Shown here piece by piece: positions 13,827 to 55,813 of a DNA stretch of 64,000 nucleotides; position 1 is the stretch's first letter; each line of letters starts with the position of its first letter. Location of the stretch: IMG/VR virus record IMGVR_UViG_3300005613_000001, positions 463,113-527,112 of that record; one strand, written 5' to 3'. The translations under genes were made by a program, and so were the position numbers. The notes under the pieces were generated by a model that was given only the letters and a program-made list of their open reading frames with translations, was not told the origin of the DNA and did not search any database.

Positions 13827-14192
13827 ATGAAGGTATTTCTGTATCTGGCGAAAAGGGACAAAACAGGAGTCAAAGTGCTCGCTCATCTAAGAAGCAATAA
13901 GAGATTATTTGGACGAGTGACCAATCTAAAAGACTTAAATCTCCCGCAAGCATGGGAATCTAGAGTAGAAGGAATCATTCACGAAAACAGAATGTTGTGG
14001 GAACCTTGGGTAGAAACTGCTGAGTCCTATCAAGCATTAAAGAAAGCGATGTTATCTAGGGGTTATACCGCTCTACCAAGCCACTCCATGCCTGTAATTA
14101 GAGGGATAAACGCCTCTGACGAGGTGCAACCTAATAATACAGATAACTTTCAACCATCCAAAACTATGATCCGCAAAGGGAAAAGAAATTAA
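13827..14192 (+). CDS. Hypothetical protein
   Basis: 121-aa ORF with typical composition, divergent from 13090-13698. Confidence 0.65.
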   Translation: MKVFLYLAKRDKTGVKVLAHLRSNKRLFGRVTNLKDLNLPQAWESRVEGIIHENRMLWEPWVETAESYQALKKAMLSRGYTALPSHSMPVIRGINASDEVQPNNTDNFQPSKTMIRKGKRN

Positions 14193-48663: not shown

Positions 48664-50283
48664 ATGAGAACATTTAAAGAATACGTTTCATTAAAAGAGG
48701 CGGCTGGAAAAGAGTCAAGCGGGGAGAATATTGTTGCCAAAAATACCACTATCTTAGGTAAAGATGAAGAAGGCGTTGAACCCTTCATGGTTGGCGCACA
48801 ATATAACCGGAAAAACCTTGGCACACTTGTTAAAGCATTTCTTGCCAGCCCCGAAGTAGAATTTGGTCCCAATATGCTTGATAGCAAAGCCACGACAAAC
48901 CCAGGGCAAAGCACAAGCGGTTTGACCAAAAACAAGCTAAAAAAGAAGACCTTGTATCTCGTTGGAGGGGCAGTAAGAGATCACATGTTGGGCCAAACCC
49001 CCAGTGATTATGACTTGGCTACCGATGCTACAATGGATGAAATCCGCCTCATTTTAAAACATGCTGGATTTGCAGAACTTAGACCACAAACTGCGGTGGA
49101 TAAGAAAAAAGAGGATAAAAAGCCTGATCCAAAATACGACAATCTCCCCGCTGCTTCTGATAATCCGAAAAAGTTCTATGTAAAAGGCACAGACATTAAA
49201 GGCACAGAATTCGTCATGGGAGCTAAAATTCATGGCGAAGAATTTGAAATTGCCACCTTTAGAAAAGATTCCAAAGGGGAAAGCGACGGTAGAACAACTC
49301 GTATGAGCTTCACACCCAAGCTTGAAGAGGACGCTGCAAGGCGTGATTTTACAGTCAATTCAATGTATATCCCACTAACAAGTGAGAATGGCCCAAATAA
49401 TAAATTAATTGATATTTATGGTGGGGTGAGAGACTTAAAACGCAAAAAAGTAAGATTCGTAGGCGATCCAAAAGAAAGATTAGAAGAAGATGAATTGCGG
49501 GCTCTTCGTTATGCTAGATTTGCCTCAATTTTTGAAGATTTGGACATGCCAGATGATATTGTAGATGCCATCGGACAAATGGCTGGACTTAAATCTCTAC
49601 AACCGTTCACTGATAAAGCAGGAAGGCAAAGAGATAGAAGAAAAAGAATTCGTGATGAATTCTTAAAAACAATGAAGAAGGCAAGTGTTAATCCTAAAAA
49701 ATACTTGATGGCGTTAAAAAGACTAGGATTAATACCAGCTATATTCCCTAATTTAAAAATTAGATTAGATGGGCCTGATGATATAAGCGATAAAAGAGAA
49801 AAACATTTAGCTATCGCCTGGTTGCTTAAAGACAATGATCCAGCTAGTGTTTATAGTATACTTACAGATGCACACTGGACTCAAGATGAAGCAAAGCGAA
49901 TTAGTTTTCTAATTAAATTCCTTCACTTCCACCCAGAAATTGATCCTGATAACCTCAACCAAATGTCTTCTGCTTTTATGAAAAGTGGCTTATCAAGTGG
50001 TTACCTCGGCGGAAAAGAAATGGGACAAAAATCACTACTTTCAACTTGGGCTCAAATGAATCCTGATAGATTCCCCGAAGGCTCTGTTGATGCTTTCTTG
50101 AAACACGTTAGCCACGGCCCAATTAAAGTATCCCATGAAGATCCAATGTTCGCTGATTTGTTCGTAGTTGATCCCTTCAGCGGCAAAAGGCGTGGAACAC
50201 CAGGCATTGCACAAAGACAAGCAGAATTGGCACATAAGAGATTTTTAGATATCTTTAAAAGCGGCCAAGCAAAAAATGTATGA
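48664..50283 (+). CDS. cca: Class II CCA-adding tRNA nucleotidyltransferase
   Basis: LYLVGGAVRD...DYDLAT, EIATFR, DAARRDFTVN, D..GG..DL, EDELRALRYARF; no HD domain; no poly(A)-polymerase G(R/K)(R/K)F signature. Confidence 0.9.
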   Translation: MRTFKEYVSLKEAAGKESSGENIVAKNTTILGKDEEGVEPFMVGAQYNRKNLGTLVKAFLASPEVEFGPNMLDSKATTNPGQSTSGLTKNKLKKKTLYLVGGAVRDHMLGQTPSDYDLATDATMDEIRLILKHAGFAELRPQTAVDKKKEDKKPDPKYDNLPAASDNPKKFYVKGTDIKGTEFVMGAKIHGEEFEIATFRKDSKGESDGRTTRMSFTPKLEEDAARRDFTVNSMYIPLTSENGPNNKLIDIYGGVRDLKRKKVRFVGDPKERLEEDELRALRYARFASIFEDLDMPDDIVDAIGQMAGLKSLQPFTDKAGRQRDRRKRIRDEFLKTMKKASVNPKKYLMALKRLGLIPAIFPNLKIRLDGPDDISDKREKHLAIAWLLKDNDPASVYSILTDAHWTQDEAKRISFLIKFLHFHPEIDPDNLNQMSSAFMKSGLSSGYLGGKEMGQKSLLSTWAQMNPDRFPEGSVDAFLKHVSHGPIKVSHEDPMFADLFVVDPFSGKRRGTPGIAQRQAELAHKRFLDIFKSGQAKNV

Positions 50284-51019
50284 ACTTAATGTCTTAACTT
50301 GTAGACCTGATTACTTTTATATCACCCTGGCATCTTTGTTGTCTTCCGATTGGACCGATGATATTAATATATGCCTGGGTGTGGCAAATGGAAGATATAT
50401 TACACAATACCTGCAAGAAGGTAGAATTAAATTAAGAAGATTACATACTAAAAAATCTTATGCTGAAATTAAAGAATGGTTGAAACAAAGACAAGCCTCT
50501 TGGAATTTCTCTAAAATATTAAGAGGCGCTAATAGAAATAAAAGGGGCATCTTTGTTCTTGAAGATGATATAATTCTAAATCCCGATTGGTTCGCACACG
50601 CACATGAAGTAATAAATGAAATAGAAAAAATATCAGATAAGTTCATTCTGTCCATATATAGCCCACATAGGAAAATGGAAGTGGGTGAAAACGGTTTCGC
50701 AGAATACCCAATTGATAGGTTCTTTGGCACGCAAGGGATGTATTACACTCCTTCTGTTGCAATTAAATTGGGGCGGTTCCTACGCGATGGTAATTACCAG
50801 CCAGGACATGATGTGATGATGCATGATTTTTGCAAAGATGAGAAAATAAAAGTGTATGTTCCAAACCGCATAACAATTCAACATATTGGTGAGAAATCAG
50901 CATTTCATGGCACCACGCTCAAAAAAGGACAAGGACCAGTACCCGGTTACTTGTGGCCGACAACTTACGAAATGCCACACTTCCACACTTCAAAGAAATA
51001 CAAGCATCAAAATCTCTAA
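50276..51019 (+). CDS. GT-A fold glycosyltransferase (GT25/GT2-like)
   Basis: IFVLEDDIIL, FGTQGMYY, D.MM, IQHIG. Confidence 0.7.
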   Translation: MYELNVLTCRPDYFYITLASLLSSDWTDDINICLGVANGRYITQYLQEGRIKLRRLHTKKSYAEIKEWLKQRQASWNFSKILRGANRNKRGIFVLEDDIILNPDWFAHAHEVINEIEKISDKFILSIYSPHRKMEVGENGFAEYPIDRFFGTQGMYYTPSVAIKLGRFLRDGNYQPGHDVMMHDFCKDEKIKVYVPNRITIQHIGEKSAFHGTTLKKGQGPVPGYLWPTTYEMPHFHTSKKYKHQNL

Positions 51020-51022
51020 TCG

Positions 51023-51063
51023 AAAAGAAAGACCCCTTATCGTTGTTTCCAACAATAAGGGGT
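51023..51063 (-). terminator. Intrinsic terminator ending the ncRNA transcript
   Basis: ACCCCTTATTGTTG-GAAA-CAACGATAAGGGGT then CTTTCTTTT on the minus strand. Confidence 0.88.
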
Positions 51064-52045
51064 ATTCCCAGCAAGCACGTTCAGGATTCAGCACTCGTTA
51101 GAATAACTAAACCCTCCATTGAGTTCCATCACCTTTTGCCAGTCTCCGCAGGTAGTGCTTACCTTGAGGCTTTTAACCTCACCGCACGCAATTGGTATAA
51201 CCTACGGCGTGATAGTTGTGGGTAGTTTACCTGTTACTTGAACTTTCCGTGCTTCTGATGATTAAATTCCAACATGCTGCTGTTACCACAGTTTAGCTGG
51301 GCCTAATCTCAGGGTGTCACTTGAGCCCTTATAACGGCTCTACTCCTCAACTTCCCATTTTGTTTCGTGGTTGGATTCCACGTCGTTTCTGAATGCCATT
51401 AGGTTGGCATTAGGCTCAACGTTGCTATACAGCCCGACGACTGTGCCCGATATTCTCGGGGGATTTGCTCACAAGCAACTGGCTGCTTGTGGTCTATCCC
51501 GCAACGTGCTAGGGTGTCAGTAAATCCTCAGTTTATCGGCACCAAGCGATCACTTGGCTCCGTATCCGACTGAAGATGCTGATGTTGGGCTGACTTTGTT
51601 CCTTGTCACATTTCTGCGCACAAGGTTTATGTGCCAATCCCACCCTCTAGACGCTTACCACGTTAAATTCGCCTGACTGACAGTTCAGACAAAACCTAAT
51701 ATGGTTGGAAGAGAGACCTACAAATTAATGCTGGGTAGCTGTCAACAACCCGTCTCTAATCCACGCCTCGCATCGAAGCCTGCCTGTGAGTATCCGGTTT
51801 GAATTCTCAGACTTTGCCGTTTCGGCGCTGTCTGTTTCATCATTCCGTGACTTCAAGCTAAAAGGCTCTTTAGAATACCCGTCCGAAGACAAGCTCCCTT
51901 GGATACCTCCGCCTGAGAGTCCCCACCCCTTTTTATGCGGATTGGGGTTTTGTACCCGTGGTCCTATTTTTCAAGAGCCATCGGGTTCCACAGGACTCCT
52001 TGAGGCCACTTACACTTTACAGTATAAGTGCGGAACTCAGTACCA
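51064..52045 (-). ncRNA. ~1-kb highly structured non-coding RNA (GOLLD/ROOL-class candidate)
   Basis: No credible minus-strand ORF; dense hairpins with GNRA/UUCG loops; long-range TGAGTTCC (52039-52032)/GGAACTCA (51127-51120) closing helix; boxA upstream, terminator downstream. Confidence 0.8.
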
Positions 52046-52048
52046 AAT

Positions 52049-52060
52049 TGTCAAAGATCA
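52049..52060 (-). promoter_or_regulatory. boxA antitermination element
   Basis: TGATCTTTGACA vs rrn boxA TGCTCTTTAACA. Confidence 0.75.
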
Positions 52061-52063
52061 AAG

Positions 52064-52235
52064 TGAACAGAGCAGGGCTTGCACCTGCATTTCCTGGTTT
52101 ATCTAGTAGTTAAACTAAATTCCCAAGCGTTCTACAAAATTGATACACCTGTTGGGGTGTCCTCTAATCTCAACTTACCGGAGGCAGTGATAAAATTAGA
52201 GGCGAGATCAACTCCGTTAATTGAACTATCTGTTC
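52064..52235 (-). ncRNA. tRNA-like RNA B (172 nt) with 90-nt D-loop domain and extended anticodon arm
   Basis: GAACAGA/TCTGTTC acceptor, U8A9, GTTC/GAAC D-stem, CTTGG/CCAGG stem, AAAT, GCAGG-TGCAAGC-CCTGC T-arm, A73. Confidence 0.8.
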
Positions 52236-52236
52236 A

Positions 52237-52368
52237 GGCGAACAGGGCAGGATTCTCACCTGCATTTCCGGTAGCGGTGCTTTGGACAACGCTTCCAGCG
52301 TTTTGCACTATTCACTTGACACTGCCGGATGGCCGAGCAACTAATTAGTGCAGTTAAACTACCTGTTC
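52237..52368 (-). ncRNA. tRNA-like RNA A (130 nt plus encoded CC) with 52-nt D-loop domain and extended anticodon arm
   Basis: GAACAGG/CCTGTTC acceptor, U8A9, GTTT/AAAC D-stem, CTGG/CCGG stem, AAAT, GCAGG-TGAGAAT-CCTGC T-arm, G73-C-C. Confidence 0.8.
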
Positions 52369-52380
52369 TTGTGTTTCGTT

Positions 52381-52512
52381 CCCAGCATTTTAACAAATCA
52401 TTTGGCTGTGTCAAGCCCAATTTTTTGTCCGGTCTGCTGAGTAACCTTTGCCTTCTTCTCTGTTCTGTGCCCAGCATTTTAACAAATCATTTGGCTGTGT
52501 CAAGCCCAATTT
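52381..52512 (-). promoter_or_regulatory. Tandem duplicated sigma70 promoters (43-bp exact direct repeat, 89-bp period)
   Basis: Each copy TTGACA-N16-TAAAAT with extended -10 TG; -35 at 52503-52498 and 52414-52409. Confidence 0.88.
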
Positions 52513-52529
52513 GTTCGGACTGCTGGTGA

Positions 52530-52835
52530 CCTTTTGCTAAATTTTTCTCAATTCACTTATCAACCGTAGTTGATGCATTGTGATTGCGAATGGCTTTAGC
52601 TGCCTGGGTTCCCTCCACATGATTGACAACTTTTCCGAAGAGGTTGTCACAGTTTTTTTTCAGGGCTCCTCTTGTACTCCGTTGCCACACGGGCGGGTTC
52701 CCAAATCTCTCAAGGTGGCTTTATGATAACGACTTCTCCTCTTCTGTCAAGGGCAGAAGTTTGGGGATCGCTGCCTCTCTCCCTAGAGGCAGCAATTCCC
52801 CAGGAGCGTTAAAGGCTTCCATCGCCACCGATTGT
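52530..52835 (-). ncRNA. Second structured ncRNA candidate (~300 nt)
   Basis: GGTGGC/GCCACC enclosing helix, 16-bp GGGGA..CCTCT/AGAGG..TCCCC hairpin, cUUCGg and cUACGg loops; preceded by boxA. Confidence 0.6.
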
Positions 52836-52836
52836 G

Positions 52837-52864
52837 TTTTCAAAGAACGTTTGCCCCGAAGGAC
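52837..52864 (-). promoter_or_regulatory. boxB-like hairpin plus boxA
   Basis: GTCC-TTCG-GGGC hairpin followed by CGTTCTTTGAAAA. Confidence 0.7.
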
Positions 52865-52908
52865 GAGAGCCAAGTATAGCGGTTTGCCAAATCCATGCAA
52901 CCCCAATT

Positions 52909-55164
52909 TCACCGCTTGGAGGACTTTTTCTTGGAGAAGCGTAGCTTTTTAAATTTTCTACGCATATTGTCTTTTTTGTCTATCTCACCAGGAGGGTCGG
53001 AGTCACCGCATTGTCCCCTAAATGCCCCGCTTCCATCACCACTAGAAGAAAATGTATTCAGATCACCGTCTTCCCAAAAGCGGTTTTCTCCAAGACTACC
53101 GAGGAACTCACTATGATGTTTCCGAATATCAGCAGCATCTTTGGAACTAATTATACCTAATTTCTGTTGAAAGTCTATCCAATCACTAAGGGCTTCGCCT
53201 CCCCATGATATTCTTTCAAACCCGCTTAGTTTATTAAGAGGTTTAAACCGTACTGCTTTATCAATATGGTCTAACTTTTCTTCTCCTGGGTAGTTAATTT
53301 GGAAGAATTTTTTAGCCCTACGAATATTTGGTACAAATGCCTGGCCGTAAGATTTCCTGTCAGGAAGCTCATCTGATTCCATTGCATCGTGAAGATGCTT
53401 AAGCCTTCTTAAGAATTCGGACATATACACTTTCATGTCGGCATCTTGCATTGCTTGATCGTAAAACCTTTTAAGTATTTGACGATTATTCAAGGATGGT
53501 TTTTCTTTTGTTAATTTTCGCCAAGAATAAACTAAGTGTATTGCATGTGTTGTCTGTCTTATTGCTCTTTTTTCCCAATCTTCACGCTTTGAATCTACTG
53601 CCGCCTCTATTACTTCAAGCGTTTTCCTTAGAGTTGTTTCCAAAGAATGTTTTGTCATTTCCTCTGTGGTGCCTCTAATTGAAGAGCGATTTTTATAACC
53701 GGATGATCTACCATAGGAAACTATACTGTGAGCGCCTCTGTCTTCATCCCAATAATCAGCTTCATCTTTTAGATTGTTAAACCAATCATTGAATTCCCCG
53801 GTTAATTCAACCGAATCACTTATATCAAAATCTTGAGGAAGTCCTTTCCGTTTCCTCCACTCCGCCTTTAGGAAACTTTTCCACAAATTCATATCCCAAA
53901 GATATTCATTAGAAACTTTATATTGTCTTCTAAATTGATCTGCTAATTGGGCATATTTCAAACTAGGTCGTCCTTCAACTTGTTTATGTGTAGGATTTTC
54001 AAAGTTTGGAACTGTTGCAACGTGTTCCCAAGTACCAGGCGTAAGAAAAACAGCTTGCGTTGGCTCAGACGCATAAATAGTATCCGTCCCTATATCAGAG
54101 ATCCCAGAGACTCCCATTTTTCTTAGAATAGCTGACCACGTAATCCACGGGCGAGTATCACTAAGTTTGTCTGACCATCGTTTTGCCACCTGATAGAGAA
54201 CACCTATATCTGAATTGAAGCTATTTGATTTCACCCATTCTTTTGTTTTCTCAAAATCAACCTCAGGATGTTTTTCAGCAAATTTTTTCAACACATCCTC
54301 AAAAGGAATTCTACCCTGTTTACCCCTTTTGATTAATCTTTTTACATGCGTCCAATATTCTTTAAGTGTCTTGTTTATAAAGCGTATTGATTTTTCGCCA
54401 AGATTTTCTTCAATATCTAAATACTCACTGTTTTTCAAAATATCCCAAAAACCATCAACAAGCTCGTCCCAATTCACCTTTTTTATATCTCTAATAGAAC
54501 CAGACAAAGTAAGACTTTTATAAAGTGACTGCTGTAATGAATCTAGTGCTCTTGCTATCACTTGATACCATTGAACTTCATCCCTGGGTTCTCCAAAAAA
54601 CTCCTCAAGGTCTTCATTTTCTATTTTCCACACTTTCTGTAAGTGCTTAGAGATAACCATTCTATACTGATTTAACAAATACAAAGGATCTCGCCCGGCA
54701 TTGATAGACGAAGTTTGCATCATCTTGCCTTTATCATTCTTCTTCTTTGTTATTAAGACTTGAATCCAAGGCTTAGCAGAGGCAAACAAATCATCTGGGT
54801 TATCTCTCATCATTTTGATTGCATAACGAATTGGATATGCATAAAGACCTATAGGCGTCTCTGTCCATGTTGTCTTGGGATTAATGCCTAATTTTTCAAG
54901 ATCAGTGAAACTAACCCATATTTCCTTGGGATGTACACCTTTAGTTTTTAAAGCTTTTTTAATAAACTCTAAATGTGTTATTCTTTCATCATAACGATAT
55001 GTCCGCCCCGTTTTTGGATTGATAAGAGGGTGTTTCACATGGGCGGGAACTATCTTCTTTTGACCTTCTAAGATAGACTCAATGAGCATCTCCATCTCCG
55101 TGTTGTGGAGATCAAGTAAAATGTCCTCACATTCGGAGGTTATTAAATACTCAGAGAACTTCAT
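52909..55164 (-). CDS. Large probable virion internal protein (start reassigned to MKFSEYL)
   Basis: ATG at 55164 preceded by TATAAATA; capsid-targeting-like start; KLGINP..TP.G.Y.YP and GVSGISD.G...EPTQAVF motifs. Confidence 0.7.
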   Translation of the reverse strand: MKFSEYLITSECEDILLDLHNTEMEMLIESILEGQKKIVPAHVKHPLINPKTGRTYRYDERITHLEFIKKALKTKGVHPKEIWVSFTDLEKLGINPKTTWTETPIGLYAYPIRYAIKMMRDNPDDLFASAKPWIQVLITKKKNDKGKMMQTSSINAGRDPLYLLNQYRMVISKHLQKVWKIENEDLEEFFGEPRDEVQWYQVIARALDSLQQSLYKSLTLSGSIRDIKKVNWDELVDGFWDILKNSEYLDIEENLGEKSIRFINKTLKEYWTHVKRLIKRGKQGRIPFEDVLKKFAEKHPEVDFEKTKEWVKSNSFNSDIGVLYQVAKRWSDKLSDTRPWITWSAILRKMGVSGISDIGTDTIYASEPTQAVFLTPGTWEHVATVPNFENPTHKQVEGRPSLKYAQLADQFRRQYKVSNEYLWDMNLWKSFLKAEWRKRKGLPQDFDISDSVELTGEFNDWFNNLKDEADYWDEDRGAHSIVSYGRSSGYKNRSSIRGTTEEMTKHSLETTLRKTLEVIEAAVDSKREDWEKRAIRQTTHAIHLVYSWRKLTKEKPSLNNRQILKRFYDQAMQDADMKVYMSEFLRRLKHLHDAMESDELPDRKSYGQAFVPNIRRAKKFFQINYPGEEKLDHIDKAVRFKPLNKLSGFERISWGGEALSDWIDFQQKLGIISSKDAADIRKHHSEFLGSLGENRFWEDGDLNTFSSSGDGSGAFRGQCGDSDPPGEIDKKDNMRRKFKKLRFSKKKSSKR

Positions 55165-55169
55165 AAAAA

Positions 55170-55177
55170 TATTTATA
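55170..55177 (-). promoter_or_regulatory. T4-type late promoter motif
   Basis: Exact TATAAATA 5 nt upstream of the ATG at 55164. Confidence 0.5.
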
Positions 55178-55309
55178 GTTTGGCACTCAATTTGCGTCCA
55201 AATTAACTTAATTAAATTAGCTGTCAATATGGCAGCTAGAAGCCTAGACCTTGTAGGATGGGCTAACTGGACGTAGTTACGACAGTTTTTATAGAAAGAG
55301 AGGTATAGT

Positions 55310-55813
55310 ATGTTACGTCGCAATCGTCATGGGCATGGACACGGTAGATGCCGAAATGATTTTCTTTTCCCAATTGAAACGCAACTCAATAAGCTTTTTG
55401 ACCAATTCTTTGAAAGTGATGGTTTAAAAGATTCTGTCAAATCAACTCAGGGATATCCAAAAATGGATGTTATTGAAGATGATAATTGTTTGCAATTCAA
55501 ATTGGCGGTTCCTGGTGTGAAGTTAGATGATCTTCAAATTGAAGTTGAGGACTTTTTGGACAGGGTATCGCCCCATAGAATTTTAACAATCTCGGGTAAA
55601 ATGTCGGAAGAGTACGCTTCAAAAGATGATGCTGTATTCCACATCAGAGAACTAAGACACTCCCAATTCCAGAGAGTGCTTCAAATTCCTGATCTTGTAG
55701 AAGGAGAACCTGAAGCTGAACTTCATGATGGCATTTTGGTTCTCAAATGGAAAATCAAAAAGGAAGAATTGCCTCCTACAAAGAAAGCAATTCCAATTAA
55801 AACTACTGAATAA
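55310..55813 (+). CDS. hsp20: Small heat-shock protein Hsp20
   Basis: YPKMDV.E......VPGV...DL.I.....L.ISG...ELR.S.F.R....P.....A.L.DGIL.L. Confidence 0.95.
   Translation: MLRRNRHGHGHGRCRNDFLFPIETQLNKLFDQFFESDGLKDSVKSTQGYPKMDVIEDDNCLQFKLAVPGVKLDDLQIEVEDFLDRVSPHRILTISGKMSEEYASKDDAVFHIRELRHSQFQRVLQIPDLVEGEPEAELHDGILVLKWKIKKEELPPTKKAIPIKTTE

Follow-up and report, generated by a model that had tools for sequence, protein, structure and literature searches.

The analyzed window comprises the last 64 kb (64,000 nucleotides) of the IMG/VR contig IMGVR_UViG_3300005613_000001, which is 527,112 bp long. It encodes baseplate and tail proteins, a primase, methylases, an Hsp20, an AAA ATPase, and many orphans, and thus belongs to a huge tailed phage. 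Between the end of a plus-strand gene (50276-51019) and the end of a minus-strand gene (52909-55323) lies a 1.9-kb gap (51020-52908) without a credible ORF. All six frames of 51020-52910 are interrupted by all three stop codons, which rules out a single reassigned stop. A 26-aa mini-ORF at about 52611-52531 is not kept in frame in a homologous locus described below. The G+C content rises to 0.46-0.48 in this region, compared to about 0.39 around it. The same sequence, 100% identical, was found in an ENA assembly (216.5-kb contig) and in a second JGI contig. Therefore, the locus is not an assembly artefact. The initial annotation described an ornate ~1-kb non-coding RNA on the minus strand at 51064-52045, and the complementary segments that it listed are all present. 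The minus strand of this segment folds at -358 kcal/mol (z = -8.7 against dinucleotide shuffles), whereas the plus strand gives -300 kcal/mol (z = -3.6).

The unit proved to be larger than this span. On the minus strand, two identical strong sigma-70-type promoter-like sites (TTGACA-16-TAAAAT with an extended -10 TG) were found at 52503-52476 and 52414-52387, inside a 55-nt direct repeat with 89-nt spacing. A third site (TTGACA-16-TATCAT, 11/12 match) lies upstream at 52750-52723. Noteworthy, only five sites with ≥11/12 matches exist in the whole 64 kb on both strands, and three of them are located here. Both hexamers of the upstream site and a homologue of the proximal promoter are kept in the closer of two homologous loci (L006, see below). 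The predicted start of the proximal copy is near 52380, about 12 nt before the first of two tRNA-shaped modules (52368-52239 and 52235-52064). These are followed by a large structured RNA with a predicted mature form of ~1,040 nt (~52063-51024). The unit ends with a predicted intrinsic terminator at 51063-51022 (14-bp stem, GAAA loop, and U-rich tail).

Both modules share the stem geometry of tRNA. Each has a 7-bp acceptor-type stem, the dinucleotide UA, a 4-bp D-type stem, one nucleotide, a 5-bp anticodon-type stem, a 4-nt variable region, a 5-bp T-type stem with a 7-nt loop, the acceptor 3′ strand, and a discriminator base. Module 1 (fold z = -3.7) has the acceptor stem GAACAGG/CCUGUUC, a long hairpin enclosed by the D-type stem, the variable region AAAU, the T-type loop UGAGAAU, and discriminator G at 52239, followed by CCU. 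Module 2 (fold z = -5.4) has an ~85-nt insertion in the D-type loop, the T-type loop UGCAAGC, and discriminator A at 52064. A shared 30-nt 3′ motif occurs only twice in the window. However, these modules are not tRNAs in the usual sense, as the anticodon-type arm continues as a long rod with a 5-6-nt loop instead of a 7-nt anticodon loop, the D-type loops hold 45-85-nt hairpin insertions, and the T-type loops lack the canonical UUC. Neither ARAGORN nor the Rfam tRNA model (E ≤ 10) called them, and ARAGORN found no tRNA or tmRNA in the 64 kb or in six related loci.

To find homologues, we followed relatives of the neighboring nucleotidyltransferase gene, which led to two further contigs. The first, L006, is a 22-kb contig that is also present in IMG/VR and JGI; its enzyme is 77% identical, and it carries the entire 1.9-kb region. 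The second, L013, is a 26-kb Logan contig with a 52% identical enzyme. It carries a diverged ~820-nt version of the RNA with its own two tandem promoter-like sites (TTGACG..TAGAAT) but lacks the tRNA-shaped modules, which are thus not needed for the large RNA. Equivalent terminators are present in both contigs. A search by blastn of 50,697 phage records with the window RNA, 24 kb of context, and the L013 RNA gave no match, and the closest deposited phage by the nucleotidyltransferase (LR756511.1, 43% aa identity) showed no RNA similarity within ±8 kb. Five exact or gapped pattern scans of IMG/VR returned only this contig and, in three of them, the L006-type contig. A 19-mer scan of metagenome and genome contigs returned nine loci, which proved to be chance matches. 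None of seven further relatives of the nucleotidyltransferase or the NUDIX-like neighbor has the RNA, and an nhmmer profile and a covariance model of the core domain (R1), run over about 375 kb of fetched loci, found nothing new. The family has three known members in the collections searched, and the covariation statistics below therefore rest on few independent events.

Next, we investigated whether the predicted structure is conserved. The large RNA is 86% identical between the window and L006, at the top of the range for flanking protein genes (75.5-86.7%), and 90-98% identical in much of the 3′ part. When the fold of the window sequence alone was tested against the L006 substitutions, 17 pairs were changed on both sides and kept, 31 were changed on one side and kept, and 25 were broken. 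In contrast, shuffling the substitutions among columns of the same base gave 4.1±1.8 double changes (maximum 11 in 1,000) and 48 broken pairs (minimum 35). RNAalifold on the two sequences gave 299 pairs, 16 of them double-compensated and 37 single-consistent. All 37 one-sided changes pass through G-U, which is strand-specific, and 15% of pairs are G-U. The modules also covary with L006: the T stems change from GCAGG/CCUGC to GUAGG/CCUAC in both modules, acceptor stem 1 from GAACAGG/CCUGUUC to GAAUGGG/UCCAUUC, and anticodon-type stem 2 from CUUGG/CCAGG to CACGG/CCGUG, whereas the D stem of module 2 changes through wobbles.

Because MAFFT misaligned L013 in the 5′ half, independent folds were compared between sequence anchors instead, with manual alignment in the variable regions. 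The minimum-energy fold of L013 rebuilds about 24 of the window helices in the same order from different sequence. For example, ACGUUGC/GCAACGU, CACAAGCA/UGCUUGUG, CCGA-GAAUA-UCGG, CAGUC-GUCG-GGCUG, and GUGG/CCAC in the window correspond to CACUAC/GUAGUG, CCAAAAG/CUUUUGG, CCUU-GAACA-AAGG, GAGUC-GUCG-GACUC, and GUGC/GCAC in L013. These observations make it very unlikely that the locus is a DNA-level element or decayed coding sequence kept by recent common descent. Only three members are known and the window and L006 are close relatives, but the deeply diverged L013 keeps the helices through compensatory changes, the G-U usage is strand-specific, and promoter-like and terminator-like signals frame the unit.

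The large RNA has a conserved 5′ leader (GAUCUUUGACAAUUUGGUA, 52059-52041), and 24 of 28 positions are identical with L013 over 52059-52032. The leader is followed by P1 (TGAGTTCC/GGAACTCA), a long-range closing helix whose 5′ strand (UGAGUUCC, 52039-52032) pairs with its 3′ strand (GGAACUCA, 51127-51120) in the MFE and centroid folds. P1 is identical in L006, and a 7-bp core (GAGUUCC/GGAACUC) is kept at the same place in L013. However, P1 never varies and is not supported by covariation, an 8-mer complement within 1 kb is not improbable by chance, and the MFE of L013 pairs the GUUCC of its P1 5′ strand elsewhere. P1 is thus plausible rather than proven. A candidate tertiary pairing of the leader UUGGUA with the invariant UACCAA at 51197-51192 never varies either and is not supported by covariation; in its own MFE, L013 pairs this leader segment with another UACCAA, at 12634-12629. 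A second candidate tertiary pairing between invariant segments joins CGUCG at 51439-51435 with CGACG at 51385-51381. Directly inside P1 is a GNRA-capped hairpin (52030-52007), which covaries strongly (CACUUAUACU-GUAA-AGUGUAAGUG in the window and ACCAGA-GAAA-UCUGGU in L013).

A domain of ~275 nt (51921-51647), flanked by a GGGUGGG direct repeat (51928-51922 and 51645-51639), is present in the window and L006 and missing in L013. It includes the least conserved stretches against L006, yet its helices are compensated. The core multi-helix domain (51512-51355) contains the invariant blocks CGGG-UAGACCA, GCAAAUCCCCC, AGUCGUCGG, and ACGACGUG..CACGAAA. RNAalifold on three sequences of this 158-nt core gave 36 pairs, 8 with both-sided changes, and covariance model R1 scored 195, 197, and 125 bits for the three members and at most 14 bits elsewhere. 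A long irregular arm (51357-51210) carries at its tip a 28-nt block (AGCUAAACUGUGGUAACAGCAGCAUGUU, 51298-51271) that is invariant in all three members, and the stem closing this block covaries (CCAGC/GUUGG, AUAGC/GUUAU, and AGAGC/GUUUU). The 3′ domain (51207-51146), which holds the invariant UACCAAUUG and UAAAAGCCUCAAGGUA, is closed by CCGUAGGU/ACCUGCGG, replaced by CUGAUAG/CUAUCAG in L013. Between P1 and the terminator lies a conserved 3′ hairpin (51115-51083; AGGGUUUAGUUAUUC/GAGUGCUGAAUCCU in the window and GAUUUUAGUCUUAUA/UAUUAGGCUGAAAUC in L013).

Seven of the eight helices in the initial annotation hold, with the reservation on P1 given above. In addition to P1 and the GNRA hairpin, the GTC-TTCG-GAC region shows six compensated or consistent pairs against L006, GCCGAAACGGC is kept in L006 with different sequence and a shifted register, CCTTG/CAAGG with CGCA-GAAA-TGTG is kept with GCAGAAATG invariant in all three members, CACAAGCA/TGCTTGTG is compensated in both L006 and L013, and AATGCCA/TGGCATT is compensated in L006 but absent in L013. 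In contrast, the hairpin GAGCC/GGCTC (51340-51323) is contradicted, as G51340 is A in L006 without compensation, whereas the competing long-range pairing 51352-51340/51225-51214 is compensated. The initial annotation also inferred a pseudoknot or switch from three parallel complementarities at 51996-51954. These exist, but GTCCT/AGGAC is removed by a 10-nt deletion in L006 and is absent in L013. The conserved structure there is a single hairpin with a bulged A (CCCG-A-UGG/CCA-CGGG; in L013 GCA-A-UGGC/GCCA-UGC), and the pseudoknot or switch is not supported.

The initial annotation left open whether the RNA is of GOLLD/ROOL class or a new large RNA class. Rfam 15 searches at the gathering score on the whole window and at E ≤ 10 on four sub-regions or homologues gave only chance or terminator-type hits. 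No model of GOLLD, ROOL, OLE, group I/II introns, RNase P, tmRNA, or tRNA matched at E ≤ 10 in the window copy, in its conserved 3′ half (601 nt, searched alone with the laxest filters), or in either homologue. An intron is further disfavored because the unit lies between complete genes, has its own promoter-like sites and terminator, and contains no ORF. An RNase P-like reading of ACAAAACCCC and AACAAAGUCAG was rejected because the order is wrong and there is no model hit. An apparent resemblance of CCGUAGG/CCUGCGG and CAAGGUAA to the 3′ end of 16S rRNA fails because the helix sequence is entirely different in L013.

Of the two alternatives, the new class fits, and a highly diverged member of GOLLD or ROOL is very unlikely. 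The phage setting and the 3′/5′ asymmetry are similar to GOLLD, a phage-encoded giant structured RNA of unknown function that is physically associated with tRNA-type elements and has a well conserved 3′ part and a variable 5′ part (PMC12286853). However, the RNA described here is longer, and its neighbors are tRNA-shaped modules without anticodon loops, fused upstream in the same transcription unit, rather than tRNA genes. ROOL is likewise a large ornate RNA of phages and prophages, often near tRNA islands and with no known protein partner, but the present RNA is about twice the size, and its host range is different and very narrow (three metagenomic huge-phage contigs). Literature searches found no description of such an RNA in huge phages.

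The 804-aa protein encoded directly upstream on the same strand (52909-55323) could in principle use the RNA as a guide or scaffold, as the gene is co-oriented and adjacent and its C-terminal part is also present upstream of the RNA in L006. This is very unlikely, because the protein has no hit in Pfam, PHROGs, NCBIfam, or PDB and no nuclease-like lead, is absent from L013, which keeps the RNA, and the RNA has its own promoter-like sites. The 247-aa gene next to the terminator is not homologous to the gene at that position in L013 and is therefore not a marker of the family. The only constant neighbor is a class II nucleotidyltransferase gene of the CCA-adding/poly(A)-polymerase family, although the models cannot tell which of the two it is. 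It is convergent and separated from the RNA by one unrelated gene. Of note, related phages with 50-58% identical enzymes lack the RNA at this position, so the link may be positional only.

We conclude that this is most probably the gene for a previously uncatalogued family of giant structured non-coding RNA, carried by a small clade of huge tailed phages, with a shared core of about 800 nt and more than 20 conserved helices. According to our model, host RNA polymerase transcribes a precursor (module 1, module 2, and the large RNA) at a high rate from the tandem sigma-70-type promoters, and RNase P and RNase Z cut at the tRNA-shaped modules. If RNase Z cuts after the discriminator of module 2 (52064), the large RNA starts CUUUGAUCUUUGACAAUUUGGUA. 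In L013, the same conserved leader follows the -10 box directly, so that its primary transcript would start about AACGAUCUUUGAAAACUUGGUA. The freed ~1,040-nt RNA would thus have a 5′ end (CUUUGAUCUUUGA...) that coincides within 1-2 nt with the predicted primary 5′ end of the module-less homologue. This is our main argument that the modules serve as processing punctuation, and perhaps also persist as stable RNAs in their own right. Module 1 is followed by CCU in both phages, and module 2 begins 3 nt later in the window. Such an arrangement would resemble tRNA punctuation and tRNA-like processing signals, apparently as in rRNA operon spacer tRNAs, MALAT1 mascRNA, and gammaherpesvirus tRNA-miRNA transcripts, but here the modules are upstream and doubled and carry large insertions. 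Bacterial Y RNAs (YrlA) also mimic the tRNA acceptor and T-arm geometry while lacking a decoding anticodon arm (PMC4201824). However, there was no Rfam Y-RNA hit, no Ro60-type gene was seen in the annotated neighborhood, and in these modules the ends lie in the acceptor-type stem.

We assign a rough probability of 0.55 to this reading as a whole, without expression or end-mapping data. The new structured RNA family is its firmest part, whereas the processing model, inferred from shape alone, is about as likely as not. By analogy with GOLLD and ROOL, we favor a trans-acting structural scaffold, either RNA-only or ribonucleoprotein, which would be closed by P1, be protected by its terminator hairpin, and serve the phage's take-over of tRNA or translation metabolism. 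This function remains doubtful, as it rests on analogy, although it is in line with the constant nucleotidyltransferase neighbor. The main alternative, a large ribozyme that processes itself or acts on the tRNA-shaped modules or on tRNAs, is unlikely. The size and complexity of the RNA, its absolutely conserved blocks (the 28-mer and several junction blocks), and its tRNA-related context speak for it, but there is no similarity to any known ribozyme model and there are no flanking exons or intron-type ORF. It is possible, but doubtful, that an RNA of about 0.8-1.04 kb, larger than GOLLD, matures by tRNA-style punctuation from a precursor carrying two expanded tRNA mimics and works as an RNA-only higher-order assembly or as a ribozyme acting on tRNA-like substrates, together with the phage's own CCA-adding-type enzyme.

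Only a handful of bacterial or phage RNAs larger than 500 nt lack a known function, and each one studied so far has yielded unexpected structural biology, as GOLLD and ROOL form nanocages and OLE forms dimers. This locus adds a larger, unrelated example with a defined sequence, plausible ends, and a testable maturation route. The constant position beside a CCA-adding/poly(A)-polymerase-family gene gives a concrete first hypothesis about the pathway involved. The two tRNA-shaped modules, with big insertions exactly where tRNA tolerates them, look like a natural counterpart of the engineered tRNA scaffold and may show how huge phages exploit host tRNA-processing enzymes.

Directly upstream of the RNA locus, on the minus strand of the window (52909-55323), lies a gene encoding an 804-aa orphan protein, for which no hit was found in Pfam, PHROGs, NCBIfam, or PDB. 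The C-terminal part of this protein is 65% identical in L006, the closer of the two homologous huge-phage contigs, whereas the protein is absent from L013, the diverged homologue. Right after the stop of the 804-aa gene, a weaker promoter-like site (TTGCAT-16-TATACT) was observed on the minus strand at 52873-52900. A UACG-capped hairpin (AUCAAC-UACG-GUUGAU) is also present on the same strand at 52559-52574. Both elements are conserved in L006, so the 390 nt upstream of the main promoters may hold further small RNA elements. Of note, the sequence GUUCUUUGAAAAC at about 52846-52858 (minus strand) resembles the conserved leader of the large RNA, which is GAUCUUUGACAAU in the window and GAUCUUUGAAAAC in L013. 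This could correspond to a repeated recognition or cleavage motif, but the resemblance may also be due to chance.

In addition, a well-formed hairpin resembling an intrinsic terminator was observed on the plus strand at 52624-52660, where TGACAACTTTTCCGAAGAGGTTGTCA is followed by eight T (CAGTTTTTTTT). This hairpin lies antisense to the upstream region of the RNA and sits in a ~52-nt block that is almost invariant in L006, although it is unclear which plus-strand transcript it would stop. The promoter cassette (TTGAC..ATGATTTGTTAAAAT) is duplicated in tandem in the window, at 52372-52426 and 52461-52515. In L006 (about 14040-14100), one copy is found at the homologous place and another is inserted about 200 nt further upstream. 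The cassette therefore seems to duplicate or move.

The gene located between the nucleotidyltransferase gene and the RNA terminator differs between phages. In L013 (11659-12417), it is NUDIX-like, as indicated by a weak Pfam hit and by a 67% identical relative that is named MutT-type, whereas in the window (50276-51019) and in L006 it is an unrelated orphan. The large RNA itself also differs between these phages, as L013 lacks a domain of ~275 nt. In the window, this domain is flanked on the minus strand by a GGGUGGG direct repeat (51922-51928 and 51639-51645), while L013 has a single GGGUGGG that serves both adjoining helices. This suggests that the domain was gained or lost by recombination between the repeats.
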